Positions 30,498-46,259 of a DNA stretch of 64,000 bases are shown here, piece after piece. The notes under the pieces were generated by a model. It ran no database searches, was not told where the DNA came from, and worked only from the letters and a program-made list of their open reading frames with translations. The stretch lies in the sequence record KT919972.1, one strand, 5' to 3'. Both the position numbers and the translations under genes were made by a program. Position 1 is the stretch's first letter. Every line of letters begins with the position of its first letter.

Positions 30498-31934
30498 TTA
30501 AAAACTGTAGCGTTCGACGCCTACAGTTTTCATCATGATCTTGATTGGCTCAAGCTCACCACCCAACAGTGAAGTCAAGATAGATGGGCTACAACCAGAT
30601 ACCAGTGCAGTACCCGCTTCACCAGCTTTAACCGGAACGTTGCCAAGACGACCACGAATGTTCCAGAAGACCAGTTGTGGCATTTCATAACCAGCACGTG
30701 CGTACTTGGCTTTGATTGCATCGAAGTTCGCAGGTTCACCGCGACCGTACCAACCACCACCAGTGTTTGCTTGATCGAATTCCATGTCACTCATGATAAG
30801 CAACTTGGTTGGCATATCTTCTTGTGAAAGATTTGCACGCTTCGCACGCTCTAGCAGAACATCAAAGCACTTACCGATGTTCGTACTCATGTCTTCGCCT
30901 GAACGATTCATGTTATCAAGACGCTCTTTCAATGAGCTACCGCGCAACTGGTGGAAGTGCGGGTCGCTTGAGAACGAAATGAATTGATCTTTGAAGATGC
31001 CTTCATTGCGTTCAGCAACATAAATCCCAAGAGACATTGCAACTTGCTTACAAGTCACACCTGAATGGTCTGTACCTGCGTTGATTGGCGTGCTCATAGA
31101 GCCAGACACGTCAACAACAGGGATGATGCGTTCATCAGAACCTTCCATGTAGTTTGGCAGAGCTTTCCATTGCTCGTTCGCTACAGACGCATTACCGTGA
31201 CTAACGCTCTTAACGACATCGTATGGGAACAATGCGCCAGCGTTGATCTTCGCTTCACCTTTTTGAAGTGACTCGATGTAGCTTGTGTAACGAGCTGAAG
31301 CGTTACGACCGAATGCTTGTTGATAACGAGCAGACGCTACAGAAGGCAACTTACCGAAGTCGATTGCATCCCATTTTTGCGCACACATCTTCTGCTCAAC
31401 AGTGTCAGACAGAAGCGACAGAATCTTACGCCACTGCTTCGCAGTCACGCCAAGAGACTTGATTGTGCGCTTGAACACATGACCGTTTTTGCTGTTTTCA
31501 CGTGGGAACCACTTCGCAGCAAGACCATTCTTGTCATTGACAATTGCGTTCGACCACATTGTAATCGCATCTTTTTCAAGACGTGTACCGAAAGCAGAAA
31601 TCAAGTCATCGTAACGACCTAGTTCTGGAATTTTCGACATTACAGCACGAGCTACGTCAGGCTGTTCATTACAAAGTTTAGTGAATAGAGTACGGAAAGT
31701 ACCACGTTCACCCGCACCACCTCGAACATCACGAGACCACAAAAGAATGCGAGTCGCTAGTTCTGGGTTTTCTGCAAACGCACGACCGAACAGTGTTTTA
31801 GACTGATCGTTGCCACGCATAGCAGCAATACCGAAGAACAAGTTTAGACACTCGTTACCTGAAGTGCTGTGAGTAACTGCACCGTTTGCTGTGCGTGAAT
31901 CGTTTGTTTGCATTGCGTTCATAAATACTGACAT
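30498..31934 (-). CDS. DUF2828 family helical-domain + vWA protein (Ro60/TROVE-like architecture)
   Basis: RDVRGGAGER, GRYDDL, AAKWFPRE in the helical part; vWA MIDAS DVSGSM, LLIMSDMEFD, LVFWN. Confidence 0.88.
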   Translation of the reverse strand: MSVFMNAMQTNDSRTANGAVTHSTSGNECLNLFFGIAAMRGNDQSKTLFGRAFAENPELATRILLWSRDVRGGAGERGTFRTLFTKLCNEQPDVARAVMSKIPELGRYDDLISAFGTRLEKDAITMWSNAIVNDKNGLAAKWFPRENSKNGHVFKRTIKSLGVTAKQWRKILSLLSDTVEQKMCAQKWDAIDFGKLPSVASARYQQAFGRNASARYTSYIESLQKGEAKINAGALFPYDVVKSVSHGNASVANEQWKALPNYMEGSDERIIPVVDVSGSMSTPINAGTDHSGVTCKQVAMSLGIYVAERNEGIFKDQFISFSSDPHFHQLRGSSLKERLDNMNRSGEDMSTNIGKCFDVLLERAKRANLSQEDMPTKLLIMSDMEFDQANTGGGWYGRGEPANFDAIKAKYARAGYEMPQLVFWNIRGRLGNVPVKAGEAGTALVSGCSPSILTSLLGGELEPIKIMMKTVGVERYSF

Positions 31935-31970
31935 TGTTCATTTCCTCATAATTAATTGCTGTAAAATGTC
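31930..31970 (-). promoter_or_regulatory. 5'-leader hairpin covering the DUF2828 start codon
   Basis: GACATT-TTACAGCAA-TTAATTATGAGGAAATGAAC-AATGTC; the 3' strand contains the ATG; T4-type early promoter GTTTACA..TATAAT (-10 at 31983-31988) just upstream. Confidence 0.6.
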
Positions 31971-32024
31971 TTTGATGAAGTGATTATACGCGAATTTTAA
32001 TGCATGTAAACACTTTTTTTTAAT

Positions 32025-32339
32025 TTATCGATAATGACGACTGATATTCGTACCATTTTTGAATATTTCAACAGATACATAACCACCAGATTCATAGCAA
32101 GTGCGTAAATTTCGGTAGCCATGCTGTTCGAAGAATGCACGAATGAAACCAGAACCTTTCTTATCACAGTCACTAATGTGAATTGGTACTTTGATTTTAA
32201 TCGGGAAAAAAGCCCCGTTTTCAACTGCATGTGTGAATTCTTTTTCACACTCGCCATTATAATGTTCGCTAAGAACTTTACGAGCTATTTGCTCTCGTTG
32301 ATTAATTTGTTTTGAAAGTTCGTCATGACTAAGCATCAT
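32025..32339 (-). CDS. hypothetical protein (paralogue of the neighbour)
   Basis: FPIKIKV...CD...G.RN pattern shared with 32336-32671. Confidence 0.7.
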   Translation of the reverse strand: MMLSHDELSKQINQREQIARKVLSEHYNGECEKEFTHAVENGAFFPIKIKVPIHISDCDKKGSGFIRAFFEQHGYRNLRTCYESGGYVSVEIFKNGTNISRHYR

Positions 32340-32671
32340 TGAAACCCCGCTTGTTTATTTTCTCGAATTGTCAATTTCACAAAAGAATATGAATAGTCTC
32401 TCACATCACGAGGGTCGCCAGAATAATGACCGAACTGTGCATCGAAATTGTGAAATCCCTCACGTCGCATGACACTCTTGATGAGAGTCATCATTTCATC
32501 ACAACATTCATTTCGTTCAAGATTAACTTGAATCGTAATCGGGAACTGAAATCCCGAAACACCACCGATCTTACGCTCAATTGATTTACGCATTTCAACG
32601 ACGAACAATTCTTCGCGTTTTGAACGATTCTGCTTGACTCGTTGAGTTAAAATATCATATAGATTGCTCAT
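32336..32671 (-). CDS. hypothetical protein (paralogue of the neighbour)
   Basis: FPITIQV...CD...G.HN; overlapping start/stop. Confidence 0.7.
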   Translation of the reverse strand: MSNLYDILTQRVKQNRSKREELFVVEMRKSIERKIGGVSGFQFPITIQVNLERNECCDEMMTLIKSVMRREGFHNFDAQFGHYSGDPRDVRDYSYSFVKLTIRENKQAGFQ

Positions 32672-33033
32672 AGATATTCCTTAATTGGTTTTGAAAAATG
32701 TCGAATGCATGAACTATCGAGACGAGGACGACCATCACCGTCAATATCTGGTAGCGTGTACCCATCATTGAATGGTTGACCGCTTTCTTTCGCGAGTTCA
32801 TAAGCATCAGCGCGATTGAAGTATTCACCACAATAATTGATGAATCCCTGCCCACGATCACCAAGTTCGCTTCGATGTTCATATGTACAGCCAAGTTCTT
32901 TCAATAGCTTAAACACGCCTTGCATGTTTCGACCAAAATGGCAGCTATCTGCAACAACAATATCCCTCTCTTCGCCATTTGGTAAAGTGACTCTAATTGC
33001 ATTTGCAGCAGCAGAAATTACGTTTAAGTGCAT
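32668..33033 (-). CDS. conserved-looking phage hypothetical protein
   Basis: QGFIN..GEYFNR.DAYELA..SGQ pattern; coupled to neighbours. Confidence 0.65.
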   Translation of the reverse strand: MHLNVISAAANAIRVTLPNGEERDIVVADSCHFGRNMQGVFKLLKELGCTYEHRSELGDRGQGFINYCGEYFNRADAYELAKESGQPFNDGYTLPDIDGDGRPRLDSSCIRHFSKPIKEYL

Positions 33034-33371
33034 GTATCTTGCCTCATAAAGATAGAACCCACACGTTTATATTGAAGTGTACTCATCAACATCATAGTCA
33101 TCTTAGAGTGAGCAACAGGGTTACTCGTTACTAGAACAACTGTGCGTGGGAAGTTACGATGATCAATTGCATGAGAGAGAATATCATATCCCTCATGACC
33201 AAGAGCACCGCCTAGATCATTGTCCATGAATAAAGTAATATCTGTAAGATTCGTATGTTTGACGAATTTCATACCGTCTTCATACGTACGCAAAACAAGC
33301 TTCTGATCTGCGGAAATTTCAGGCGCAGTGAAATTATCGATATCACGCATATCATCAATCATTACAAACAT
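33024..33371 (-). CDS. cyclic-phosphate-processing receiver-like domain protein
   Basis: MIDDMR...LFMDNDLG...EGYDIL...LVTSNP..H..M matches the xxDDxR / DHDLG / GYD / HS.NP signature. Confidence 0.7.
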   Translation of the reverse strand: MFVMIDDMRDIDNFTAPEISADQKLVLRTYEDGMKFVKHTNLTDITLFMDNDLGGALGHEGYDILSHAIDHRNFPRTVVLVTSNPVAHSKMTMMLMSTLQYKRVGSIFMRQDTCT

Positions 33372-33436
33372 AGTAAATTCTCGTTAGTTATTTCCGATAA
33401 ATACATGATACAGGTTTAACAACAGGAAGTCAACAC

Positions 33437-33808
33437 ATGAATGACGAAAAAATAAAATCTTTTGAAGAGTACCTAAACGAAGGTTGGTTTGAAAGACAAT
33501 GGTCTAGATACAAAGCAGGGGCTGACTCGCGCAGCATTAAGAAACTAGCCAAGATGCACACTAAATTGTTGCATATCGAACAGAAAGCCAAGCAAAACAA
33601 ATATCGATATGAAGCAGTGCGATATAATTACGAACACATCAAGATGAACGTGTTAGACGCGAAGAGGCTGATCAATAAGCTACGCTATAAGAAAGGTATT
33701 AGTGATGAACTAAGAATGGCAATGGACAAGTTAGATGTCGAGCTAGATAGGCTGAATGATTTTGCAGTTGAAGGTTTACATGAGCTAATGATTCAACATA
33801 AGCTATAA
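33437..33808 (+). CDS. late protein with a capsid-targeting-like N-terminus
   Basis: GATAAATA late-type promoter about 33396-33403; KIKSFEEYLNE. Confidence 0.7.
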   Translation: MNDEKIKSFEEYLNEGWFERQWSRYKAGADSRSIKKLAKMHTKLLHIEQKAKQNKYRYEAVRYNYEHIKMNVLDAKRLINKLRYKKGISDELRMAMDKLDVELDRLNDFAVEGLHELMIQHKL

Positions 33809-33812
33809 AAAT

Positions 33813-33838
33813 AAAAGCCCCAATTAAGGGGCTTTTTT
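33813..33838. terminator. bidirectional terminator
   Basis: AAAAGCCCC-AATTAA-GGGGCTTTTTT, same hairpin as at 2737. Confidence 0.85.
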
Positions 33839-33839
33839 G

Positions 33840-34052
33840 TTAGTGTGAATGGCGTAACTTTTTTTCGATCATTCGATCTACAATCGTGGAGTACATAAGA
33901 TGTTCTTTATAATATTTCTCATCAACTCGGTTACATTGAAAGTCTCGAAAATCTTTGCGCAGACGTGCAATAAATTTATTAAGCGTTTTGCGTACTTTGC
34001 AAACTTCAGACAATTCCATGCTTTTTAGTGTTTCTTCAGAAAGTATTTCCAT
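33840..34052 (-). CDS. hypothetical protein
   Basis: GAGG SD, 70 aa. Confidence 0.65.
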   Translation of the reverse strand: MEILSEETLKSMELSEVCKVRKTLNKFIARLRKDFRDFQCNRVDEKYYKEHLMYSTIVDRMIEKKLRHSH

Positions 34053-34080
34053 GATTGCTCACCTCTTAGTTAATAGAATA

Positions 34081-34126
34081 CGGGAGACACAGGAATCGAA
34101 CCTATTGCCTTGACCACATATCTCCC
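34081..34126 (-). ncRNA. miniature tRNA-like element (acceptor stem + T arm only)
   Basis: GGGAGAT-ATGTGGTCAAGGCA-ATAGG-TTCGATT-CCTGT-GTCTCCC-G. Confidence 0.55.
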
Positions 34127-34150
34127 ACTGAGAAGTTACGCCAATTCAGA

Positions 34151-34378
34151 TTAATGCGCTATGCTTTGTAAACGGCGCATACGCTCACGCTGCGATAACT
34201 CATCGAGATTGGGTTTATCAATCTCTTCGTCTTTCTCTGCGGCTTCTGCTTCCTTTTTAATCTTTTCAGCATTGGGACCAATGTTCTTCCAAAGAGGTGC
34301 GTTGCGCCAATTTTCATTATGCCCGTTACCCGAACCACGCCCTTCACGAGCATGAGACTTTTGGTGAATGTTCTTCAT
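34151..34378 (-). CDS. small hypothetical protein
   Basis: 75 aa, coupled to the upstream ORF. Confidence 0.6.
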   Translation of the reverse strand: MKNIHQKSHAREGRGSGNGHNENWRNAPLWKNIGPNAEKIKKEAEAAEKDEEIDKPNLDELSQRERMRRLQSIAH

Positions 34379-34584
34379 TATTCGTTAGATTTCTTTGTTA
34401 CTTGAGTTGCAAGACCTACCGCAGCAGCACCAGCGGCTACTTTAGCGCCTGTTTTCGCAGCTTTACCCGCTTTCTTTGCACCAGACTTGACACGATCTTT
34501 TACTGAACGTTTCTTTTTCTTTTTATCTTCTGGCTGTTGTTCTTGTAGTTCAGACATGAACTTATCGAATGTTTTATCACTCAT
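34378..34584 (-). CDS. small basic protein with a capsid-targeting-like N-terminus
   Basis: GGAG SD, TAAATA upstream (about 34616-34621), MSDKTFDKFMSE, K/A-rich tail. Confidence 0.7.
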   Translation of the reverse strand: MSDKTFDKFMSELQEQQPEDKKKKKRSVKDRVKSGAKKAGKAAKTGAKVAAGAAAVGLATQVTKKSNE

Positions 34585-34689
34585 GACATTTCTCCAATTG
34601 ATTTGAGTTCATCTGTATTTAGAAGATATTTCACATCATTCACTCTATGATGATAAATACGTAAAGTAAACAATAAAAGAGAATCGACA

Positions 34690-35028
34690 ATGGCATTCAC
34701 TAAGATCGAACTCCCTGCAAAGAGAAGCAGAAGAAGCATTTATATACCTGCGGGTCAGTACTATGCAGATCTAGACATGACACATCCACAGCAGCGTGAT
34801 GGGAATTATTTTTCAGTTCTTGCAACGTTTGGGGATGTGCAGATTGCATTCGGCGGGAGATGGTATGACAAGAAAAACCCACAAGACCCCGATGACCCAT
34901 TGCCTTTATTCCCAGAAGATTTCATTTTAGTTTCGTATAATGGACATTATGAAGCACAAGGCAATTTATTCAACACGAGCACTAGAATTTGGTTTAGTTC
35001 GATTTCTGGTTGCACACTACTATATTAA
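34690..35028 (+). CDS. late hypothetical protein
   Basis: GATAAATA upstream (about 34652), GAG SD. Confidence 0.7.
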   Translation: MAFTKIELPAKRSRRSIYIPAGQYYADLDMTHPQQRDGNYFSVLATFGDVQIAFGGRWYDKKNPQDPDDPLPLFPEDFILVSYNGHYEAQGNLFNTSTRIWFSSISGCTLLY

Positions 35029-35037
35029 GGACACAAA

Positions 35038-36753
35038 ATGAGTTCTATTAATTTACCTGGCGGAGGACAACCTCTACCAAAATACGTCGAAGAAGCGCCT
35101 GTAAATGGGTTACTATACGGTCGTAAAGATGAAGCATGGGAGCCAATCCCTGAAGATTCACTAACACCGTTTCCATTAGGAACGACACCTAATTCATTCG
35201 ATGCAGAGACTGGCGACAGAGCCGCAGCAATCGCTCTAAGAGACGCTTATGCATCAGCAAACCCGTCATGGGTTGCGTTTTATGTAAACAACCCGACATC
35301 TGCGATTGACCTTGTATATGAAGACATTTCTGTTGGCGGGACAGTTGCTGAAAGACAAACGTATACAGGAACACAATGGATTTCACAGCGTATTGTTGAA
35401 GGGATACCCGGGCCAATCGGGCCATCAGGTGAAGGGTCAATCCCTCCATTCGCGTCGATTGCTGAACGCGATTCTTTCTTCGCGTCATCAGGGAATAAAT
35501 CACTATTGAAAAAAGGATTACCTGTATTCGTTCAGGAATTTGAAGGTCGAGCAAGCTCATATTATTGGAGAGGCGAGACAAACCCAAATACGTACGATGC
35601 TTCTAAGTTCTCACTAGCCGCAGTTCAATCAGGGAACGGTGATTTATACTTAGCAAATGCGCATAAGATATCTTCGTCAGGTCAGAATATAGCAATAACC
35701 AATATTATCGACAACGTGAGCTTTCACCCCGTATGGCAGACATACGAAGAAGGGAATACTGCAACGGTACGTGTGCGTTCCATCGAGTCTGTTAATGAAT
35801 ATTCTGATAAATCAGCACAGATAACTAACCCGCGTTGGGAACTAGTGCAGATGCCAAACAACAGAACGTTATACTCAGTTGTGGTTGATTTTGTCAATGC
35901 ATACGATGAAATTGATGTTGTCGTTTATAAAAACACAGATGAATATTACCAAACTAAAATATTCGATATTACACCGGGCGAAGTTGATGTATTAATCGAA
36001 CCACCGTTTGACATTCGTTCAATGGACGTGCTTGAGCTTGAGTTGCGCAACCCGAACTTAGATGTTGTAGTATGGGGTAACTTATCAACAGGAATCCCAT
36101 GGAATAAACCAACAACACGTGATTTTACCGATGAGACTGTTGTGATTCAACCTGATTTAGATGCAGTCGAAACAAGAGTAAGTGACATCGAAGCAAACGC
36201 GATTGTCACTGGGGATAATGTTTCTGAACTGACAAATGACGCGGGATATATTAGCGACAAAGACATCATTTTCCAGAAGAGCAATAATACTGGAACTAAC
36301 GTGTTAACGCTAAACGGGACAGGTGAGGAGGGTACTATCCCACTATCGCAAACCGATGAAAATGGGGTGTTATTCGAATACTCGTCAACTACTGATAATT
36401 TCAGACCACTTGAAGATAAACCAATGCACATCAAACTTAGAATAAGTATTGATCGTTCTGGTGGCGGGTCAGACCCTGAGATTATAACGTGGGTTGAATC
36501 AGCAGCGACAGACACAACAGTTCCTAATGCATTTACACAAGAAACATCAGCATTTCGAATGGTTGATCTGCAAACCGACCGTACATTATTTTTAATCGAT
36601 ACGATTTTAAATATGGACTCAAGTCGTTATTATCGCATAAGACTTCGTAATTTAAACGGCGACAATTTTGATGTTGATACATTCGGCCCGTTTACAACAA
36701 GTTCGGGTAATGATATTTTTGCACCCGCAGTTGAGTTTATGCTTAGTCGATAA
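35038..36753 (+). CDS. putative trimeric virion appendage protein with an N-terminal foldon-like motif
   Basis: [22 protein letters not shown] resembles the fibritin foldon [33 protein letters not shown] fibre-type motif. Confidence 0.6.
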   Translation: [571 protein letters not shown]

Positions 36754-36778
36754 AAGAGCCGAAAGGCTCTTTTTTTAT
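36754..36778 (+). terminator. Rho-independent terminator
   Basis: AAAAGAGCC-GAAA-GGCTCTTTTTTT. Confidence 0.9.
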
Positions 36779-36789
36779 TTTGAAGAAAC

Positions 36790-36814: not shown

Positions 36815-36829
36815 AGATGTGCAATACAC

Positions 36830-37073
36830 AGACATTCGAGAAGTGTTTTATCGTCTTTCCTTAAATCTCATTTGACTATAACGATGTTTCTCATCGGAAA
36901 AATACCCATGATTCGGCATGAGTCCTATTTCGTTTGACAGTACGAACACCGTCTTAATGGTCATTTCCTACCATGAGAATGCGTCAGGCTCACGTCATCA
37001 CTGAGAAAGCAGCTAGTGCGCCTCATTACTATTAAAGTTTGCTTTGATTTGTAATGATTGCTGTACAATGTCT
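36830..37073 (-). ncRNA. structured ncRNA A (244 nt, helix+ACAGCAA family)
   Basis: ends pair (AGACATT/AATGTCT); ACAGCAA follows the 5' strand; 39-nt 3' block shared with ncRNA B. Confidence 0.65.
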
Positions 37074-37084
37074 TATTGCGAATT

Positions 37085-39091: not shown

Positions 39092-39319
39092 AGACAATAC
39101 CGAAGTGTTTTTTCGTCTTTTGCATAAATCGGAGTTGACTAGCTTATTGTTTCTCAACAAGCAAATATCGTCTGTTTCAGCGACGCGCCTATCTGACTAT
39201 TTCTAGACAGAGAGAATCTTTCCTTTCAAGCTGCGCCTAAGCAAGCTCAGGTTAAAATCAGCCCAGGTTAAGATCATCACTTCTTTTAAGTAATTTCAAT
39301 TGTTTGCTGTATATTGTCT
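39092..39319 (-). ncRNA. structured ncRNA B (228 nt, helix+ACAGCAA family)
   Basis: ends pair (AGACAATA/TATTGTCT); ACAGCAA follows the 5' strand; 3' block shared with ncRNA A. Confidence 0.65.
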
Positions 39320-39382
39320 CTCTCACCATGCTCGTGATATGCCGAAGCAAAGTATCATTTGTCGCATGATAAGAGCTTAATA

Positions 39383-39532: not shown

Positions 39533-39607
39533 TGGTGGACACGCAGGGAGTCGAACCCTATCTTCCTCATTGCAAGTGAGGCGCTTTCCCAATTAAGCTA
39601 ACGGCCC
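39533..39607 (-). tRNA. tRNA-Ala(TGC)
   Basis: CCTCA-CTTGCAA-TGAGG, G3:U70; irregular lower acceptor stem. Confidence 0.82.
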
Positions 39608-39615
39608 ATATTTTT

Positions 39616-39828: not shown

Positions 39829-39840
39829 AATCACCAATTT

Positions 39841-40116
39841 TTACATATATTCAATAATATCAAAGTTGCCATGAAGCATGAAATTAGTTGCTTCTTGATC
39901 AAGCTCTGAGAAGAACTTTCGTACTTTATCTCGTGTAGAAAGCTTCAATTCACCGTTCGAATCAAGCTTCATACCTATTGACGATACGAAATCAGCAAAT
40001 GCAGCAGCGTCTTTACTGTCAGCGTATACATACGGAATCTTACCGTCATGAGTGTCTACGCCAGACCCACGATGCTTTGCTTCGTTAAGATATTCAGAAA
40101 ATGTTTTAATAGACAT
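39841..40116 (-). CDS. late protein with a capsid-targeting-like N-terminus
   Basis: MSIKTFSEYLNEA; GAGG SD; TATAAATA at 40147-40154. Confidence 0.8.
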   Translation of the reverse strand: MSIKTFSEYLNEAKHRGSGVDTHDGKIPYVYADSKDAAAFADFVSSIGMKLDSNGELKLSTRDKVRKFFSELDQEATNFMLHGNFDIIEYM

Positions 40117-40179
40117 GTTATTACCTCTAAAATGTAGTTACATGACTATTTATATCATGATAACACTTTCTAATCAATA

Positions 40180-40254
40180 TGGTGCTCCCGTTCGGAATCG
40201 AACCGAATTCTGCGGTTTACAAGACCGCTGCATCGCCATCAATGCTTCAGGAGC
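40180..40254 (-). tRNA. tRNA-Thr(TGT)
   Basis: GCGGT-CTTGTAA-ACCGC, CCA. Confidence 0.93.
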
Positions 40255-40260
40255 GTAACT

Positions 40261-40375
40261 GAGTGTTATTACTAGCGTCGTCCAGACCAGTGATACCGAC
40301 ACTGAAGAGGAATCGAACCTCGAACTTTTCTTTTCATCAGAAGAATATTAGTAAATTGTTTGCTGAAAACACTCT
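40261..40375 (-). ncRNA. circularly permuted tRNA-mimic (YrlA-like) RNA
   Basis: closing GAGTGTT/AACACTC + TCAGCAA; then T arm GAGG-TTCGATT-CCTC, looped acceptor-like stem CAGTG/CACTG, GG-containing D-like hairpin. Confidence 0.65.
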
Positions 40376-40383
40376 ATGGTATT

Positions 40384-40457
40384 TGGCTGGGGATAACAGA
40401 TTCGAACTGATACCAACGCATTCAAAGTACGTTATGCTGCCTTTACACCAATCCCCA
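40384..40457 (-). tRNA. tRNA-Gln(TTG)
   Basis: T1-A72, loop CT-TTG-AA, G73, CCA. Confidence 0.92.
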
Positions 40458-40476
40458 ATTGTTCTTAAATTATCTT

Positions 40477-40552
40477 TGGCGGAACCGACGGGTTTCGAAC
40501 CCGCTACCTTCTCCGTGACAGGGAGACATGCAACCTTTTACACCTCGGCTCC
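40477..40552 (-). tRNA. tRNA-Asp(GTC)
   Basis: TCTCC-CTGTCAC-GGAGA, G73, CCA. Confidence 0.93.
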
Positions 40553-40621
40553 CCAAAGACAACTTAAATTAGTTGCTTTGTTTTTTCAAGTTCACACTTA
40601 ACGGTAGTGACTCTCCGAATT

Positions 40622-40697
40622 TGGCGCTTCATGTTGGACTCGAACCAACGACTCTCTGATTAACAGTCAGACACTCTACCAACTGAGTTAATGAAGC
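40622..40697 (-). tRNA. tRNA-Asn(GTT)
   Basis: TCTGA-CTGTTAA-TCAGA, G73, CCA. Confidence 0.93.
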
Positions 40698-40698
40698 G

Positions 40699-40773
40699 TG
40701 GCGGGCGTGGAGAATTTCGAAATCTCGACTTGCAAGTTAACAGCTTGCTACTCTGCCTCTGAGTTACACACCC
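40699..40773 (-). tRNA. tRNA-Asn(GTT), second copy
   Basis: GCAAG-CTGTTAA-CTTGC, G73, CCA. Confidence 0.88.
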
Positions 40774-40785
40774 TTGAATTTAAAC

Positions 40786-40843
40786 AGTAATCCTTTTTGC
40801 TTTTTCCAAATAAAAGTTTTGTATTGTTTGCTGTAAGATTACT
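40786..40843 (-). ncRNA. minimal helix+ACAGCAA RNA (58 nt)
   Basis: AGTAATCT/GGATTACT closing helix, TACAGCAA, internal CTTTT-ATTTGGA-AAAAG hairpin. Confidence 0.55.
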
Positions 40844-40848
40844 TAAAC

Positions 40849-40922
40849 TGGCAGGGGCATAGAGATTCGAACTCTAACGAACGGGTTTGGAATCCGTCAT
40901 GCTGCCTTTACATCATGCCCCT
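40849..40922 (-). tRNA. tRNA-Trp(CCA)
   Basis: loop TT-CCA-AA, G73, CCA. Confidence 0.9.
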
Positions 40923-40928
40923 AAAATT

Positions 40929-41002
40929 TGGTAGTCCCTAAGAGAATCGAACTCTTACCAAGCGATTATCGGTCGCACGCTCTACCGTTGAGCTAAGGGA
41001 CT
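40929..41002 (-). tRNA. tRNA-Ile(GAT)
   Basis: loop CC-GAT-AA, CCA. Confidence 0.9.
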
Positions 41003-41065
41003 AAAGTGTGCGCATTTCAGCGCACTGTTAATCGGTTAAGTGACTAAACTTCCCGGTTAACTAAT

Positions 41066-41164
41066 TGGCGGAAGACTAGGGATTCGAACCCTAACATCAC
41101 CTCCCGGTGACCGACGGTTTTCAAGACCGTTGCCGCTACCCAGAATCTTTCGGCTAAGCCTTCC
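41066..41164 (-). tRNA. tRNA-Ser(TGA), enlarged D loop
   Basis: ACGGT-CTTGAAA-ACCGT, long variable arm, 99 nt, CCA. Confidence 0.9.
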
Positions 41165-41171
41165 ATTAATT

Positions 41172-41248
41172 TGGTTGCGTGGGGCTGGATTCGAACCAAC
41201 GACCTTGAGCTTATGAAACTCACGAGCTGACCACTGCTCTACCCCGCA
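41172..41248 (-). tRNA. tRNA-Met(CAT), initiator-like body
   Basis: (T)GCGGGG-TA-GAGC..., loop TT-CAT-AA, ACCA; one extra base in the acceptor 3' strand, and the GGG/CCC anticodon-stem triplet is absent. Confidence 0.8.
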
Positions 41249-41258
41249 ATTATTCAAC

Positions 41259-41345
41259 AGCTTGCGTTCTTTGGTCTGTTTATCGCTGTCTGAACTGAGT
41301 TCGTCGAGTGATCAATAGATTAAGTTGAATTGCAGTATGCAAGCT
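41259..41345 (-). ncRNA. small helix+ACTGCAA RNA (87 nt)
   Basis: AGCTTGC/GCAAGCT closing helix followed by AT-ACTGCAA. Confidence 0.55.
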
Positions 41346-41350
41346 AAAAC

Positions 41351-41436
41351 TGGTGGAGCGTAGAGGAATCGAACCTCTCTACCCGTTAAGGGTCAGGGAT
41401 TTACAGTCCCCTGTCTCACCTTGAGACGTACGCTCC
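41351..41436 (-). tRNA. tRNA-Tyr(GTA)
   Basis: loop CT-GTA-AA, long variable arm, CCA. Confidence 0.93.
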
Positions 41437-41442
41437 AGAATT

Positions 41443-41517
41443 TGGTTCTCCCGACGAGATTCGAACTCGCGCACTTCACCTTGAAAGGGTGATGACCTAC
41501 CGTTAGTCCACGGGAGA
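41443..41517 (-). tRNA. tRNA-Glu(TTC)
   Basis: TCACC-CTTTCAA-GGTGA, CCA. Confidence 0.92.
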
Positions 41518-41580
41518 ATTAAATTGTATATTGATTTGCAAGCTAATCAACTCGCAAAGCGATACACAATGTATCTAATT

Positions 41581-41657
41581 TGGTACGCCGCCCTGGACTC
41601 GAACCAGACACCTGAGAGTTAAAAGCTCCCTGCTCTTCCATGATGAGCTACCGACGC
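41581..41657 (-). tRNA. tRNA-Lys(TTT)
   Basis: GGGAG-CTTTTAA-CTCTC, CCA. Confidence 0.92.
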
Positions 41658-41668
41658 ATTATAAAATC

Positions 41669-41742
41669 TGGTGGGTCCACAGAGATTCGAACTCTAACTG
41701 AGGGATTAAAAGTCCCATATGCTACCGTTACATCATAGACCC
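41669..41742 (-). tRNA. tRNA-Lys(TTT), second copy
   Basis: loop CT-TTT-AA, different body, CCA. Confidence 0.9.
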
Positions 41743-41748
41743 AGAATG

Positions 41749-41823
41749 TGGTGCACCCCCTCGGAATCGAACCGAGCACTGCGGGACTTCAATCCGCCGC
41801 TTTTCCTGATAAGCTAAGGGTGC
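41749..41823 (-). tRNA. tRNA-Phe(GAA)
   Basis: loop TT-GAA-GT (G37), CCA. Confidence 0.88.
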
Positions 41824-41824
41824 A

Positions 41825-41902
41825 TGGTACGCAAGAAGAGATTCGAACTCTTAACTTCTGGTTTCTAAGACCAGTGCCTCTGCCAGATTGGGCTACTTGC
41901 GC
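41825..41902 (-). tRNA. tRNA-Leu(TAG), short variable loop
   Basis: CTGGT-CTTAGAA-ACCAG, CCA. Confidence 0.92.
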
Positions 41903-42111
41903 ATTAATTCGTTTTCATCGATTACGGAAATTTCTATTGATGACGGAATAACAATTGAGTTAGTAATTCCCGCTTCTTTCAATAAATCGACTAAATTTTG
42001 TATATACTGATTAGCTTTCGATGCTGGTAAATCACCGACATCAACTCTAAACACTACACGTTCGTTTTCTTTCAGTGTCAATTTTGACACATCTTTAATT
42101 ATGTCATTCAT
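41893..42111 (-). CDS. small protein resembling a segment of the T4-type portal (gp20)
   Basis: RVVFRVDVGDLPASKANQYIQNL; AGAAG SD; downstream of tandem early promoters; stop overlaps the tRNA-Leu 5' end. Confidence 0.65.
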   Translation of the reverse strand: MNDIIKDVSKLTLKENERVVFRVDVGDLPASKANQYIQNLVDLLKEAGITNSIVIPSSIEISVIDENELMRK

Positions 42112-42115
42112 GTTC

Positions 42116-42244
42116 TTCTCTATTGTACATGATGTTTATATCGTTGTAAACATCTTTTTGAAAAAACTTTTCATTCAGCTTTGAATGATATTTCGCTTTT
42201 CTCTATTGTACATGATGTTTTCGTCATTGTAAACATCTTTTTTG
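42116..42244 (-). promoter_or_regulatory. two tandem T4-type early promoters (direct repeat)
   Basis: AAAAAGATGTTTACAA...CATCATGTACAATAGAGAA occurs at about 42116-42160 and 42199-42244. Confidence 0.8.
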
Positions 42245-42448
42245 AATTTATTTTGAAGAACTTAACGTTTTCATTTTCTATGTGTTAATATTAACACTCG
42301 CTCAAGACATCATAAACACTAATTTATGAAAAGTTCGCTAAATTCTATCATCTCGACAGTACTTAACGAGATACGGTCCTAAGCGTATCAATTCGTAGAA
42401 GCAGTTTCGGGAATGTGCGAAAGCGAGCTTCAATCAAACAACACTAAC

Positions 42449-42524
42449 TGGCACCCAATACAAGATTCGAACTTGTAACCTTCGCCTTCGTAGGGCGCTG
42501 CTCTTCCAATTGAGCTAATCGGGC
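42449..42524 (-). tRNA. tRNA-Arg(ACG)
   Basis: loop CT-ACG-AA, CCA. Confidence 0.92.
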
Positions 42525-42532
42525 ATTAAAAC

Positions 42533-42609
42533 TGGTCCGTGACAAGCGATTCGAACGCTTAACTTCTCCGCCCCAAACGGAGTACTCTACCAGATTGAGC
42601 TAGTCACGG
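42533..42609 (-). tRNA. tRNA-Pro(TGG)
   Basis: CTCCG-TTTGGGG-CGGAG, C1-G72, A73, CCA. Confidence 0.93.
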
Positions 42610-42618
42610 ATTTTAAAT

Positions 42619-42692
42619 TGGTCGGGACGAAGAGACTCGAACTCTTACCACATGCTCCCAAAGCATGAACGCTACCTTTACGCCACGTCCCG
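42619..42692 (-). tRNA. tRNA-Pro(TGG), second copy
   Basis: CATGC-TTTGGGA-GCATG, C1-G72, A73, CCA. Confidence 0.92.
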
Positions 42693-42769
42693 TTTGTTCT
42701 TTAACTTTGTTTATCATACTCTGTAATCAAAGTACGTTAAACAAAATTTCTTAACTTTCTTACGCCCAT

Positions 42770-42793
42770 AAAAAAAGGACGCTATTTGCGTCC
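42770..42793 (-). terminator. Rho-independent terminator
   Basis: - strand: AGGACGC-AAATA-GCGTCCTTTTTTT. Confidence 0.8.
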
Positions 42794-43064
42794 TCAAGTA
42801 TACTTCTATGTTATACTATCGGACTACAAGAGGGTATCCCACTTCTGGTTCGCAATCGGATTCGCTAGATACACGAATTCTGAGCGCAGAAAATCGCTGC
42901 GTAATGTCTCAGATGAATGTGTAAACGAATGCGTCATTGAATGCTCTCTTGAAATAAAAATTAAAATTTGTTTTGTTTCTTTATAGTACTTATAACACTA
43001 AATCTGACGATTTGCGGTATTTTCGCAGAAAATTGAAAAAAAATTTCAACTTTCTGCGATTTTA

Positions 43065-43301
43065 TTAACCTAAGTGTTTTCGCTTGTTCATTTCAACAAG
43101 AATTTCGTCGTTATAGTGCTTATTAAGCTCAACGAATTTCTTGTGTTGATCTGAAGTCAATTCGTTTGTATCGTTCAGATGCTTCAAAAAACCAAGAGGC
43201 TTACGAAACGACTTGCGATATTCATTTAGACGCTCATCTGTTAGATTGCGCAATTGTTTCGGAGTCAGTAACGTTTTGTTGATATTAAATGTTCCGCTCA
43301 T
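43065..43301 (-). CDS. hypothetical protein
   Basis: GAGG SD before MSGTFNINK. Confidence 0.7.
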   Translation of the reverse strand: MSGTFNINKTLLTPKQLRNLTDERLNEYRKSFRKPLGFLKHLNDTNELTSDQHKKFVELNKHYNDEILVEMNKRKHLG

Positions 43302-43327
43302 GTTATACCTCACTAGTTTATCAAAAA

Positions 43328-43443
43328 TGGTAGTCGGGGCTGGATTCGAACCAGCGACCACGTGCTTAACAGGCAATTGAAGGAGTGCTGGAGCGATACT
43401 TGTCAGTATCATTCTTCGTGCTCTACCACTGAGCTACCCGACT
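43328..43443 (-). ncRNA. tRNA-Asn(GTT) body with a 41-nt structured insertion at position 28/29
   Basis: removing 43376-43416 gives a regular 75-nt cloverleaf with CGTGC-CTGTTAA-GCACG and CCA. Confidence 0.8.
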
Positions 43444-43448
43444 ATAAA

Positions 43449-43745
43449 TTATTTGTCTTGCAATTGAGTGTAGTCACCTTTCATGAACGCATCCATGAAT
43501 TCACGTGTACTACTAAACTCTTTGAAATCACGCGGGCCATCATATTTCGTAATATAACGAACTTTCCCATCTCTAACCGTGATTTTACCATGACCCCAAT
43601 TCACAGAATCAGTTTTCTTACTAATTTGAACTTGCTTCTTCTGCAACCTGCGAACAAGTTCTTCTAAAAATCTACTGTCATCAGCAGCGCCAGATTGAAA
43701 TCCGCCGCCACCAAATTCAATTAGGAATTCACCAAACGTTTTCAT
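43449..43745 (-). CDS. late protein with a capsid-targeting-like N-terminus
   Basis: MKTFGEFLIE; GAGG SD; CATAAATA at about 43774-43781. Confidence 0.8.
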   Translation of the reverse strand: MKTFGEFLIEFGGGGFQSGAADDSRFLEELVRRLQKKQVQISKKTDSVNWGHGKITVRDGKVRYITKYDGPRDFKEFSSTREFMDAFMKGDYTQLQDK

Positions 43746-43776
43746 ACTTCTTCCTCTAAACTCTAAAAGAAAGTAT

Positions 43777-44301
43777 TTATGATTTCGTTTTGAACTTCAA
43801 ATTTCGATATTCAAAGTTTCGTTTGTCTTTTTTATTGTAATACGTATCCCAATCAATAGAAACAGGACAGTTCTTACTACCCACACGAGATAAGAAAACG
43901 TCGTGAGTGTCTTTGTAAGCTTCTCTGAGAGACTTTACTTGTTTCTCATGATGAGTTATGTACTCAGCACACGCTTTGTTGTACTCAGCTTTAGAGAAGC
44001 GATCATCGCCCGTGAAATTACCGTTTAGATACGGTCGAATAACACGAACACGTTCTTTAGACCATCCCATACTAAAACTATTTTCAATTCGACCGATGAT
44101 TTCACCAGTCTTTTTACATCGTGCAAGAATAACCCAGCAACGCTCTCTTCGAAAGTCTTTTCGAGTGAATACATTGATGTACTTATCAACATACTCTTGA
44201 TAGCGTTCGTTATATATTTTACGAAGTCTGCTACGTTCTTCAATCGTCATAGCAGCACGTTCTTCTTTAGAGAACGCTTCAACGAACTTCAATGGTTTCA
44301 T
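43777..44301 (-). CDS. hypothetical basic protein
   Basis: GAGG SD before MKPLKF. Confidence 0.75.
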   Translation of the reverse strand: MKPLKFVEAFSKEERAAMTIEERSRLRKIYNERYQEYVDKYINVFTRKDFRRERCWVILARCKKTGEIIGRIENSFSMGWSKERVRVIRPYLNGNFTGDDRFSKAEYNKACAEYITHHEKQVKSLREAYKDTHDVFLSRVGSKNCPVSIDWDTYYNKKDKRNFEYRNLKFKTKS

Positions 44302-44314
44302 TATAATTTCCTCT

Positions 44315-44419
44315 TGGCGCCGCTCGTGTGAATCGAACACACGTCAAACACAACACCTCTTCCACCCAATTAGAGTTTCGAAGTAAGAGCTAATCAGCAT
44401 TTCAGAGCAGCCGAGCGTT
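44315..44419 (-). ncRNA. atypical tRNA-like RNA
   Basis: T arm GTGTG-TTCGATT-CACAC, partial acceptor CGCTC/GAGCG, 3' GCCA; interior does not form a normal D/anticodon arm. Confidence 0.55.
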
Positions 44420-44559
44420 ATTTCTACATACAAGACTTCGACATCTCACATGCACTTTCTACTCGGTCCCAGTGATTCGGTACCAACGTAGGTTGCGAGC
44501 CTACGTCTGCACTAATGTTGGGAATACACTGTGTATTGTACGCCAGTTAGCGGCATTTT

Positions 44560-44790
44560 TTAAAGATAGCTGTCAAAAACATCATCACTGACTTCTTCAA
44601 TCTTGATGTCAGCGTAACATTCGTTCGCAACTGCTCGAATTTCATCTATTGAAACTGTACCTGAGTACAAAACAACAGAGTCGTTCGGAATCACAACATC
44701 ACACATGTATCTGTCAAACATTTCAGTTCTGAAATCGTAATCGACGTAGCAACCGTGCATTGATGTGATAACTAGCAATTTATGTGACAT
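44560..44790 (-). CDS. hypothetical protein
   Basis: GAGG SD; promoter TTGACA at about 44845-44850 upstream. Confidence 0.7.
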   Translation of the reverse strand: MSHKLLVITSMHGCYVDYDFRTEMFDRYMCDVVIPNDSVVLYSGTVSIDEIRAVANECYADIKIEEVSDDVFDSYL

Positions 44791-44868
44791 AATGTTTTCC
44801 TCGTGTAGTTGATAATGTGTATACTACACGTTGATGAAACGTCTGTCAACAACTTTTTCAATTTATTT

Positions 44869-44946
44869 TGGTGACCCCAACAGGACTCGAACCTGTAACC
44901 TACCGATTATGAGTCGGTTGCTCTAACCGTGTTGAGCTATAGGGCC
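44869..44946 (-). tRNA. tRNA-Ile2(CAT, lysidine type)
   Basis: GGCCCTA acceptor, ACCGA-CTCATAA-TCGGT; body resembles bacterial ileX. Confidence 0.88.
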
Positions 44947-44947
44947 A

Positions 44948-45316
44948 TCATTTCTCCAGAAATCGACCAACTTTCGCAGCGAAGATGTTTGCTTCTTCTG
45001 TAATACGAGCAGTCGATTTAATTTGATGAAAAGCGTCTTGTTGATGTAGCTCATCGAGCTTATCTGCACATTTCATCAATTCTTTTATAGTTTGCATAAT
45101 CTCAATATTATCAAACTGACTTGTATCAGGGTGATAATTTAGATTGTCTAATATCGGCAGAACTTGTTGATAGCAACCCATGCCAATGAAGTTTATCATA
45201 AGTCTATACTGCATTTCAACAGCAAATGTACAATATTTTCGAAGATTGCGCTTTACAATCTCACAACGATGCAATATACAATCAAGTTCGTCATTTATGT
45301 CATTAAACTTATTCAT
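44948..45316 (-). CDS. hypothetical protein
   Basis: GAGGG SD before MNKFND. Confidence 0.7.
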   Translation of the reverse strand: MNKFNDINDELDCILHRCEIVKRNLRKYCTFAVEMQYRLMINFIGMGCYQQVLPILDNLNYHPDTSQFDNIEIMQTIKELMKCADKLDELHQQDAFHQIKSTARITEEANIFAAKVGRFLEK

Positions 45317-45330
45317 AAACCCTCGAAAAT

Positions 45331-45455
45331 TGGAGGAGAGTACGGGATTTGAACCACGTGACAAAAAGATTTACCTAGTTATTAAGGTTTGCAGCATGAA
45401 TGCTTGTCAGTATTCTTTAACATTCTTTTGCTCTACCAGACTGAGCTAACTCTCC
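45331..45455 (-). ncRNA. tRNA body with the anticodon loop replaced by a ~54-nt module
   Basis: GGAGAGT acceptor, D arm, AAAGA/TCTTT stem enclosing GAATACT-GACA-AGCATTC-ATGCTGCAAA, T arm, TCCA. Confidence 0.7.
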
Positions 45456-45461
45456 AGAATT

Positions 45462-45580
45462 TGAAGGTGAAGTGCAGGACTCGAACCTGCGACCTCCGGC
45501 GTGCATGTGAATGCAGAATGAAATCTTATCAGACTTCGTTTTTTTTGGCCGGCATTCTAACCAACTGAACTAACTTCACC
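45462..45580 (-). ncRNA. Asp-like tRNA body with the anticodon loop replaced by a ~47-nt module
   Basis: D arm GTTC-AGTTGGTTA-GAAT, CCGGC/GCCGG stem enclosing GAAGTCT-GATA-AGATTTC-ATTCTGCAT; no CCA. Confidence 0.7.
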
Positions 45581-45594
45581 AATGTAAAAACATA

Positions 45595-45719
45595 TTGAGC
45601 AGGGTGCAGGATTCGAACCTGCGTCACGATCTTGGAAATGATATGCTAAATTGATTGCAGAATACAAACTTAACAGCTTGCGTTTATGCTACGTGTGCTA
45701 GCCACTACACCAACCCTGC
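45595..45719 (-). ncRNA. Gly-like tRNA body with a 49-nt insertion at position 28/29
   Basis: GCAGGGT acceptor, U73, residual loop ATTTCCAA; insert holds a hairpin + ATTCTGCAA; 17-bp extended acceptor duplex. Confidence 0.75.
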
Positions 45720-45793
45720 TCAATATGTTCTTGAGAGTGCTTGTGATTAACCACAAGCACCAAAAATCCTCTAGTTATATTTGCCTTAGCTAA

Positions 45794-45952
45794 TCAACAC
45801 AACCTGAAATCGTGCGCTTTATTTACGGGATGAATGACCCGTTCGCATATGATTAGCGCAAAAGTATGAATGCGCACCTTTTCTTCTTCAATGTCCAAGG
45901 CAAAGAGGACGATGAATACTAGTGCGAGAAGATATACAATCAAATTGTTCAC
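45794..45952 (-). CDS. possible small membrane protein
   Basis: GAG SD + GTG start, hydrophobic N-terminus. Confidence 0.4.
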   Translation of the reverse strand: MNNLIVYLLALVFIVLFALDIEEEKVRIHTFALIICERVIHPVNKAHDFRLC

Positions 45953-45976
45953 CTCGCTTGATAAGTGAGAGTACAT

Positions 45977-46099
45977 TGGTCGAGTGTAACGGAATCGAAC
46001 CGTTCCCACGATCTCCCTATGATATGCGTAAATTGGTTGCTGAATATAATCATGTCTGATTACAGTATGCTACGTGTGCTGCCACTACACCAACACTCG
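45977..46099 (-). ncRNA. Pro-like tRNA body (AGG) with a 49-nt insertion at position 28/29
   Basis: C1-G72, A73, CCA; loop AT-AGG-GA; insert holds a hairpin + ATTCAGCAA; 21-bp extended acceptor duplex. Confidence 0.75.
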
Positions 46100-46120
46100 A
46101 CCAATGTACTCTCGATATTT

Positions 46121-46259
46121 TAAATGTGCGCTACTTGCACGCCGACTGAGCGAATTTTAACTCAGCTAGTTTTTGATTGAGAATTCGTCCGCTAAGAGTA
46201 TCCCTGCACGCCAGAACGTATACTGGCTCCATGTATTCATTGCGGCTAACGCACATTTA
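46121..46259 (-). ncRNA. structured RNA with a long closing helix (variant GCCGCAA)
   Basis: TAAATGTGCGTTA/TAGCGCACATTTA, then GCCGCAA and two internal hairpins. Confidence 0.55.

Follow-up and report, generated by a model that had tools for sequence, protein, structure and literature searches.

Which RNA, if any, does the DUF2828 protein of Vibrio phage phi-Grn1 recognize? Its gene lies on the minus strand, downstream of a cluster of transfer RNA (tRNA) genes (28 tRNAs by ARAGORN, 30 Rfam tRNA matches). The window, meaning the whole stretch of DNA analyzed here, is 64,000 nucleotides (nt) long and identical to positions 1-64000 of the phi-Grn1 record (KT919972.1). phi-Grn1 is a KVP40-like T4-type phage of the genus Schizotequatrovirus. 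An earlier reading of this DNA, made from the letters alone (the sequence-only reading), had proposed that the protein resembles Ro60 and that a dispersed module of a helix and a short motif marks its RNA partners. Ro60 and its Y RNAs form a long-studied RNA-surveillance particle, whose bacterial and phage roles are still unclear. In this particle, the Y RNA sits on the outer surface of the protein ring, and the ends of misfolded RNAs enter the central hole. The analysis below makes it quite probable that DUF2828 is a structural relative of Ro60 and that a C(A/U)GCAA module is the RNA recognition element of a Y-RNA-like family. The gene in question is the following.

30498..31934, minus strand: DUF2828 + DUF7788 gene, 478 amino acids (Pfam PF11443 and PF25043; PHROG 850 'RNA-binding protein')

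The structure of the protein was predicted by AlphaFold from an alignment of 31 homologs, with a predicted local distance difference test (pLDDT) score of 81 and a predicted template modeling (pTM) score of 0.82. When the model was compared with the PDB by Foldseek, the top five matches were all full-length Ro60/TROVE structures (9l5y, 1yvr, 9kop, 9nep), with expectation values (E) of 1.4e-7 to 5.8e-6, template modeling (TM) scores of 0.48-0.57 and 504-578 aligned columns. They include the Ro60 of Thermus phage phiLo (the best match, E 1.4e-7), Xenopus Ro and a Ro60/pre-5S RNA complex. Matches after the top five covered the vWA domain only. Matches to designed armadillo-repeat proteins in the PDB searches were discounted, as they reflect helical repeats only. 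The residues of the metal ion-dependent adhesion site (MIDAS), D275, S277, S279, T351 and D383 (DxSxS...T...D), are invariant in the 31 homologs. R68, D69, R71, R77, K141, W142, R145 and R203 are further examples of invariant residues. The protein thus models as a Ro60-type helical ring plus vWA domain in its architecture, which bears out the layout proposed by the sequence-only reading. No NCBIfam family matched the protein, and no nuclease family or fold was found in it by Pfam, NCBIfam or Foldseek. The Ro-likeness is already present in annotation: PHROG 850 and RefSeq use the name 'RNA-binding protein', and the mycobacteriophage homologs are called 'Ro-like RNA binding protein'.

The RNA module consists of one strand of a 7-base pair (bp) helix, a 3-nt linker, the single-stranded motif C[A/T]GCA[A/C/T], a body, the 3' helix strand and then a G. 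All 12 motif heptamers reported by the sequence-only reading are present at the positions it gave, read on the minus strand. Its count of about 12 module sites was largely upheld: 11 sites share the strict geometry, and the twelfth, at 46240-46, is doubtful. Its order of helix and then motif also stands; the spacing, given as 1-3 nt, is in fact exactly 3 nt at the 11 sites (UUA, GUA, AUA, AUU and similar). At these sites, the 5' helix strand mostly begins with AG and the motif often continues as NCAAT. At two of them, the 3' strand is followed by AG in place of G. The helix is closed in two ways. Six sites pair with distant sequence over spans of 43-244 nt (motif starts 31961, 37063, 39309, 40365, 40833 and 41335). 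The other five (43390, 45394, 45516, 45660 and 46042) lie within tRNA-like RNAs and close the helix with a 4-nt GNNA loop (GACA, GATA or GTTA). In this hairpin form, the G of the loop replaces the G that otherwise follows the 3' strand. As had been suggested, the terminal and hairpin copies are permuted forms of one 7-bp/3-nt/motif layout.

The module occurs in four settings: the leader of a messenger RNA (mRNA), five RNAs of 58-244 nt that stand alone within the tRNA cluster, five tRNA-like RNAs and the doubtful twelfth site. The copies lie 0 to about 14 kb upstream of the DUF2828 gene, on its strand. For comparison, a covariance model, R1, was built from 37 short RNAs of distant phages and contains no KVP40-like sequence. 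The stand-alone RNAs and the doubtful member are as follows.

36830..37073, minus strand: long module RNA, 244 nt; AGACATT-GTA-CAGCAA ... AATGTCT-G; partial R1 match at 37023-37075 (E 0.047)
39092..39319, minus strand: long module RNA, 228 nt; AGACAAT-ATA-CAGCAA ... ATTGTCT-G; R1 match at 39263-39321 (E 0.15); KVP40 ortholog at L003 12460
40261..40375, minus strand: RNA of about 115 nt with terminal helix GAGTGTT/AACACTC; CAGCAA at 40365-40360; R1 match at 40326-40369 (E 0.005)
40786..40843, minus strand: short module RNA, 58 nt; AGTAATC-TTA-CAGCAA ... GATTACT-G; R1 match at 40784-40845 (42.9 bits, E 4e-11)
41259..41345, minus strand: module RNA, 87 nt; AGCTTGC-ATA-CTGCAA ... GCAAGCT-G; full-length R1 match at 41257-41347 (E 0.33)
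46125..46255, minus strand: doubtful member at the twelfth site, about 131 nt; TGTGCGT-TAG-CCGCAA (46240-46) ... GCGCACA with no G following; no R1 match

The 244-nt RNA lies between tRNA-Ser and a terminator at 36814-36794 and has an ortholog in KVP40. It looks like a paralog of the 228-nt RNA, because both carry the box AAAACACTTC just before the 3' helix strand. The 40261..40375 RNA has one outer helix mismatch if the standard 3-nt linker is applied; it holds an internal T-arm-like hairpin, GAGGTTCGATTCCTC, at 40321-40307, and its D arm is uncertain. The 58-nt RNA lies between tRNA-Trp and tRNA-Asn. The 87-nt RNA, between tRNA-Tyr and tRNA-Met, is identical in KVP40. The twelfth element lies just upstream of E5, one of the tRNA-like RNAs listed below. 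It is rated doubtful because its motif is not conserved (CCGCAA in phi-Grn1, CCGAAA in KVP40, ACGCAA in phage D525), though its terminal helix covaries between phages (TGTGCGT/GCGCACA in phi-Grn1 and KVP40, TTGCGTG/CACGCAA in D525). In its KVP40 version, this element contains GCCGAA, which fits the canonical Ro60 motif GNCGAA. Single-sequence folding was uninformative, with z-scores from +0.4 to -2.8.

Could a common 6-mer and short complementary runs have met here by chance? A loose criterion of the 6-mer plus a 7-bp helix leaves room for this, as it gives about three sites per shuffled region and 14 sites on the plus strand of the window. By the same criterion, the region of interest holds 10 sites, against 3.1 +/- 1.6 (maximum 8) in 300 dinucleotide shuffles. 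Searches this loose, whether for the 6-mer with a 7-bp helix of any kind or for a hairpin that allows one mismatch and a loop of 3-8 nt, are noisy and give a lower bound only. The extended motif C[AT]GCA[ACT][ACT]C[ACT][ACT]T matched the minus strand of the window at 11 places, of which 8 fall in the region, and the plus strand at two. When R1 was scored at every position of the window, the best matches were six of the sites flagged earlier, all on the minus strand.

The association of module and gene was then compared across genomes. Among 50,697 phage records, 711 contain a DUF2828 homolog; in the protein database, the homologs number at least 7,500. The hosts of these phages include Escherichia, Salmonella, Mycobacterium, Listeria, Staphylococcus, Campylobacter, Enterococcus, Bacillus and Aeromonas, and the carriers include Felix O1-type, KVP40-type and Listeria P100-type phages and the cluster L mycobacteriophages. 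An IMG/VR sample provided 79 metagenomic phage loci with DUF2828 proteins 46-54% identical. In these loci, CAGCAA occurs on the gene strand at 3.05/kb in the first 250 nt after the gene and at 2.16/kb in the second 250 nt, against a background of about 0.3/kb; on the opposite strand, the frequency is 0.05-0.26/kb. The enrichment just downstream of DUF2828 is about tenfold and confined to the gene strand. One to three copies of a helix, a 3-nt linker and C(A/U)GCAA were present there in about 68 of the 79 loci, with widely different helix sequences. Of the 115 gene-adjacent motifs, 36 come with a perfect 7-bp helix and its trailing G; the figure for the opposite strand is 11 of 685. With R1, a search of both strands of 1.43 Mb gave 87 matches at E <= 0.01. 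Every one is on the gene strand, 64 of them lie within 1 kb of the gene, and 62 of the 87 loci have at least one.

The same module was found in cultured phages. In Felixounavirus humlepung (46% identity), four copies are interspersed with the tRNAs that directly follow DUF2828; mycobacteriophage LeBron (32% identity) has three in the 360-nt gap after gp53, and Listeria phage AG20 (34% identity) has three in the gap before the gene. Contigs of metagenome-assembled genomes (MAGs) that bear DUF2828 in the genome collection also show it. Co-occurrence of module and gene had been set beforehand as the check on which the proposal could fail, and in metagenomic T4-like phages, Felixounavirus, LeBron, AG20 and the MAG contigs it was strongly positive.

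In many of the metagenomic phages, the second of the copies that follow DUF2828 is a conserved RNA of about 300 nt (GGATCGG-TA-CAGCAAAAAGTAC...), as at L007 11490-11800. In the L010-L030 clade (helix GGTTCC/GGAACC), the loop of the first short RNA has one or two extra AGCAA boxes about 15 nt apart. The loops of this clade hold 27 GCAA boxes altogether, against 4.6 expected, and the other clades lack them. Since they are confined to one clade, these boxes are not part of the core module.

The pairing of the helix was examined in 73 distinct model-aligned RNAs. Six of the seven helix pairs vary on both sides, and the second pair is always G-C. Cells changed on both sides numbered 180, against 55 +/- 5 in shuffles. 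The covariation score was 0.90, against 0.20 for shuffles and 0.08-0.19 when the partners were slid by 1-3 columns. Compensatory changes are also seen between orthologs of the window's RNAs. The 58-nt RNA has AGTAATC/GATTACT in phi-Grn1, AGCAATC/GATTGCT in KVP40 and TGGATAC/GTATCCA in phage D479; E5 has GTAATCA/TGATTAT in phi-Grn1 and GCTTACT/AGTAAGT in D525. The claim that the helix beside the fixed motif covaries is thereby confirmed. A chance origin of the sites is excluded by the R1 match of E 4e-11 in the window, the 87 gene-strand matches with none opposite, the tenfold enrichment by position and strand, and this covariation beyond its controls.

A different explanation is that the module is a processing or stability signal for a ribonuclease or chaperone, of host or phage, in the transcripts of tRNA clusters, with DUF2828 nearby only incidentally. 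Most copies in the window do lie between tRNAs, where transcripts need cutting, and a helix beside a single strand is the typical layout of a nuclease site. Against this, many phages have the module beside DUF2828 with no tRNA within 10 kb (L007 and L008, for example), and one copy lies in the 5' leader of the DUF2828 gene itself. The pairing is also seen across phages of Proteobacteria, Actinobacteria and Firmicutes, hosts with different RNA-processing enzymes, and DUF2828 is the only neighbor common to all module loci compared. We regard a processing signal as improbable.

The leader copy is further evidence for a tie between the module and DUF2828. The elements of this transcription unit are listed here.

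31983..32010, minus strand: sigma-70-like promoter of the DUF2828 gene, TTTACA-16-TATAAT, 11/12 consensus
31929..31971, minus strand: leader module copy, putative translational operator, 43 nt; R1 match at 31927-31973 (21.2 bits, E 5e-4)
30466..30488, minus strand: intrinsic terminator downstream of the DUF2828 gene, with 10 pairs in the terminator scan, 6 of them GC, and then a T run

The promoter is the best consensus match in the 16.6-kb region; from it, transcription would start a few bases ahead of the leader helix. The DUF2828 gene forms its own transcription unit, because a terminator follows it. The R1 match behind this promoter agrees with the statement of the sequence-only reading that the DUF2828 mRNA leader carries a copy. 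In the leader, AGACATT (31971-31965) is followed by the linker TTA and CAGCAA (31961-31956). The loop holds the Shine-Dalgarno sequence, and the ATG (31934-31932) falls within the 3' strand AATGTCA (31935-31929). The copy thus appears, from its sequence, to have the layout of a translational operator. The arrangement is kept in KVP40 and D525, and D479 (71% identity) has a different helix, AGAAATT/GATTTCT. Similarly, the leaders of four other loci (L044, L055, L058 and L097) form a 36-nt hairpin, in which NNN-CAGCAA opens the loop, the hairpin ends right at the ribosome-binding site and the helix differs each time. The minimal element that these hairpins define is a 7-bp stem and a loop of about 18 nt, the loop opening with three bases and then CAGCAA. 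In translational operators such as those of T4 gp32, RegA, the MS2 coat protein and ribosomal proteins, the protein likewise has its RNA target in its own mRNA, at the start codon or the ribosome-binding site; the likeness of the leader copy to them is one of predicted arrangement.

The remaining five copies are carried by RNAs of 113-122 nt, E1-E5, whose acceptor, D and T arms are normal. Where a tRNA has its anticodon loop, they have 46-54 extra bases that hold the permuted module.

43331..43443, minus strand: E1, 113 nt; Rfam tRNA 49.8 bits with a 54-nt insert; module at 43411-43385, TGATACT-GACA-AGTATCG-CTC-CAGCAC
45334..45455, minus strand: E2, 122 nt; Rfam tRNA 48.2 bits with a 49-nt insert; module at 45415-45389, GAATACT-GACA-AGCATTC-ATG-CTGCAA, one mismatch
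45466..45579, minus strand: E3, 114 nt; Rfam tRNA 53.6 bits with a 46-nt insert; module at 45537-45511, GAAGTCT-GATA-AGATTTC-ATT-CTGCAT
45598..45719, minus strand: E4, 122 nt; 'tRNA-Cys' of 122 nt in GenBank; module at 45681-45655, GCAAGCT-GTTA-AGTTTGT-ATT-CTGCAA
45980..46099, minus strand: E5, 120 nt; pseudo tRNA in GenBank; module at 46063-46037, GTAATCA-GACA-TGATTAT-ATT-CAGCAA

The module of E3 lies within an intact 5-bp anticodon stem. E4 and E5 are tRNA-like in the record and fold with the same arms. The helices of the D525 orthologs are GAATATT/AGTATTC for E2, which pairs perfectly, and GCAAGTT/AGCTTGT for E4. None of the five has a 7-nt anticodon loop with a readable anticodon, and none was called by ARAGORN.

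E1-E5 might instead be decayed or intron-bearing tRNA genes that share their insert by descent and not by function. GenBank and RefSeq list them as tRNAs or pseudo-tRNAs (tRNA-Val for E1, then Asn, Phe, Cys and 'OTHER' in GenBank), the KVP40 record has orthologs of three of them as pseudo-tRNAs (E1 as tRNA-Pseudo-3), and E1-E3, through their acceptor, D and T arms, reach 48-54 bits with the tRNA model Rfam RF00005. The insert, however, carries the module that is also found in RNAs unrelated to tRNA and in an mRNA leader, and its helix covaries between orthologs. Such chimeras recur in phages with 46-49% identical DUF2828. The L050 locus (49%) has two tRNA-like RNAs near the gene with the hairpin-form module inside, and L068, a 233-kb T4-like phage (46%), has one of 119 nt with the module just upstream of the RNA; the tRNA-like RNAs of these two loci measure 113-121 nt. 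The tRNAs of phi-Grn1 already cover all 20 amino acids, and we know of no bacterial splicing system for anticodon-loop inserts of 45-55 nt. Decayed or intron-bearing tRNAs are a very improbable account of E1-E5. Many entries for a 'pseudo-tRNA' or 'intron-containing tRNA' in large phages appear to be protein-docking tRNA mimics, which would account for inflated tRNA counts.

How does this set of RNAs compare with known Y RNAs? Bacterial Ro60 (Rsr) genes adjoin YrlA and YrlB genes on the same strand (Chen et al. 2014, PMC4201824). YrlA has a tRNA-like T/acceptor/D domain inside a terminal stem and GNCGAA(N)G near its 5' end (PMC4201824; Rfam RF02553). The phage loci are similar in several respects. 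A ring and vWA protein is encoded beside several same-strand small RNAs, some of them short and some with a tRNA-like T/D/acceptor domain; a short conserved motif lies near the 5' end next to the terminal stem; and RNA-repair genes lie near DUF2828 in AG20 and L007, as in the bacterial rsr-yrlA-rtcBA operon. They differ in that the protein belongs to the DUF2828/DUF7788 families and not to Pfam TROVE, and in that C(A/U)GCAA stands 3 nt after a 7-bp helix in place of GNCGAA(N)G, which is absent from all robust module copies. The window also has five RNAs with their ends placed as in tRNA and an mRNA-leader copy, neither of which is described for Y RNAs in the literature searched.

The closest resemblance to YrlA is outside the window. 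The middle RNA of LeBron spans the full Rfam YrlA model through its tRNA-like domain (39.8 bits, E 1.7e-7; the gathering score is 69 bits). Its stem has TGGACTC-UAG-CAGCAA paired with GAGTCCA-G where YrlA has GNCGAA. One Felixounavirus copy of 126 nt has T, acceptor-like and D arms in a YrlA-like layout, and the layout of the 40261..40375 RNA, as judged from its sequence, also resembles YrlA. E1-E5 end at the acceptor stem and carry the module at the tip of the anticodon arm, while YrlA ends at the protein-binding stem; they would be the same kind of object as YrlA in circularly permuted form. No RNA of the window reaches the YrlA gathering score of 69 bits, and in Rfam scans of the window and four distant loci the only matches above threshold were to the tRNA clan. 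The sole YrlA match in the window, 32 bits at 45430-45494 on the minus strand, is an artefact, composed of the E3 T arm, the acceptor ends and then the E2 D arm. Because the E3 T arm precedes the E2 D arm, tandem tRNA-like genes can mimic the permuted order of YrlA and mislead automated scans.

Phage-borne Ro60 proteins provide two further comparisons. The Ro60 of Thermus phage phiLo binds the adjacent CGAA-bearing RNAs Yrl1 and Yrl2 and the host PNPase, as shown experimentally (PMC12135203; PDB 9l5y). It tops the structural matches of the DUF2828 model, and both are Ro60-fold proteins of phages that encode small RNAs alongside; unlike the phiLo protein, which is a TROVE protein with CGAA RNAs and demonstrated binding, DUF2828 is known here from sequence and model. 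In Escherichia phage Bas63, which is of the Felix O1 type, gp130 has a Ro60-like structure, is encoded immediately upstream of a run of tRNAs and counters the Ppl defence (2024 PhageMaP preprint, PMC11482910). Its authors guess that some of the nearby 'tRNAs' are Y RNAs, with no RNA identified (PMC11482910). The DUF2828 gene of Felixounavirus humlepung is in the same position, with its four module RNAs among the tRNAs. From this synteny only, gp130 is inferred to be a DUF2828 ortholog.

The tandem arrangement of small RNAs next to a protein gene is also that of type III toxin-antitoxin loci. The RNAs could accordingly be inhibitors that restrain a harmful DUF2828 protein, in place of adaptors that give it a function. 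One to four RNA copies adjoin the gene, as in ToxIN-type loci, and LeBron gp53 overexpressed alone is moderately toxic to M. smegmatis (PMC13148394). Unlike ToxIN, DUF2828 has no endoribonuclease fold or nuclease domain and models as a Ro60-type ring with a vWA domain, and the RNAs are diverse in sequence and not identical processed repeats of one unit. Several of them also have elaborate tRNA-like domains, for which a simple inhibitor has no need. We consider an inhibitory role unlikely; it still requires that DUF2828 binds the module.

The module with its covarying helix accompanies the gene of this Ro60-resembling protein in phages of three bacterial phyla, and module and protein together point to a widespread ribonucleoprotein. 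Several observations weigh against DUF2828 as a Ro60 relative that recognizes the module. A sequence link to TROVE was not detected: the Pfam scan gave only PF11443 and PF25043, and phmmer and profile searches against the TROVE chains of the PDB gave E 1.4 at best. With a fold match and no sequence match, DUF2828 is therefore Ro60-like in architecture and not a TROVE family member by sequence. A TM score of about 0.55 with a root-mean-square deviation near 8 A indicates the same architecture and not a close superposition. The mode of binding cannot be transferred from Ro60, because the motif differs from GNCGAA. Among the 87 loci, 25 have no short-form R1 match, and many of these show long forms or leader copies by eye. 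In the covariation set, 98.8% of the helix cells are paired, a percentage inflated by how the alignments were made, since the seed was selected to pair perfectly and the model itself aligned the larger set; this bias has less effect on the diversity of pair types and on the slid-partner controls. Bas63 gp130 counters the Ppl defence with no evident link to tRNA. Literature searches found neither expression data nor a transcriptome of a KVP40-like phage.

If DUF2828 is such a Ro60 relative, the phage would make Y-RNA-like RNAs that all display the module and differ in body: some are short A-rich stem-loops, others measure about 115-245 nt and five are tRNA-shaped. The protein would bind the module directly. 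Surplus protein may then repress its own translation through the leader copy, which encloses the ribosome-binding site and overlaps the start codon. The ribonucleoprotein could link the protein with tRNA-shaped RNAs or with enzymes that handle tRNA, and serve RNA surveillance, repair or the blunting of a host defence during infection. The phenotype of Bas63 gp130, a presumed ortholog, is a hint of a counter-defence role. A broader proposal sees in DUF2828 and these RNAs a second branch of Ro60-type ribonucleoproteins, ancient, phage-borne and with an RNA code of its own, in which the tRNA-shaped members are adaptors or decoys. The sequenced phages with this branch would number at least 711, and the metagenomic contigs thousands; the tRNA-shaped members would bring the protein to tRNA-handling enzymes or, alternatively, shield against host defences directed at tRNA or other nucleic acids. 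We put it forward tentatively and think it possible, with more doubt than confidence.

Ro60-Y RNA particles, phage ones included, and the Ro-likeness of DUF2828 are already known. In Rfam 15 and the searchable literature, which leaves aside subscription-only papers, the RNA family, its recognition code, its breadth among phages, the tRNA chimeras and the leader operator were not found described, in agreement with the earlier statement that DUF2828 has no described RNA partner; a prior description of the RNA family cannot be fully excluded. The result is a concrete candidate RNA partner, with a minimal element of 36 nt, for a protein family labelled only 'RNA-binding' in databases. If Bas63 gp130 is a member of the family, these RNAs would be a handle on a phage ribonucleoprotein that acts against host immunity or in RNA repair.

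RNA-repair genes were observed near DUF2828 in other phages. AG20 has an RtcB-type 'tRNA splicing ligase' and a phosphohydrolase (L091 5255-6503), and L007 has an RNA ligase and an AAA_33 kinase (14890-16555). LeBron encodes a polynucleotide kinase and an RNA ligase (PMC13148394). By analogy, such neighbors are a hint of a role in RNA repair or surveillance. In the window, the neighbor of the DUF2828 gene is the following.

29924..30448, minus strand: DUF458 / PF04308 RNaseH-like gene (GenBank note)

This gene lies directly after DUF2828 in the window, KVP40, D525 and L006, and 4 kb away in L050. It was considered as a general third component and rejected, as tblastn found it only in KVP40-like phages, L006 and L050, and it is missing from the other 80-odd loci. 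It is probably lineage-specific and not a core part.

Three minor observations concern the tRNA cluster, all on the minus strand. The pseudo 'tRNA-OTHER' of GenBank at 39536-39607, missed by ARAGORN, scores 44.9 bits as a tRNA and has the anticodon loop CTTGCAA (Ala, TGC). At 40625-40697, GenBank gives tRNA-Asp, and ARAGORN reads the anticodon GTT (Asn). Two near-identical strong early-type promoters (AAAAAGATGTTTACAA ... TGTACAATAGAG), spaced by about 80 nt, are found at 42122-42233, upstream of a small gene at 41893-42111 and the downstream tRNAs.

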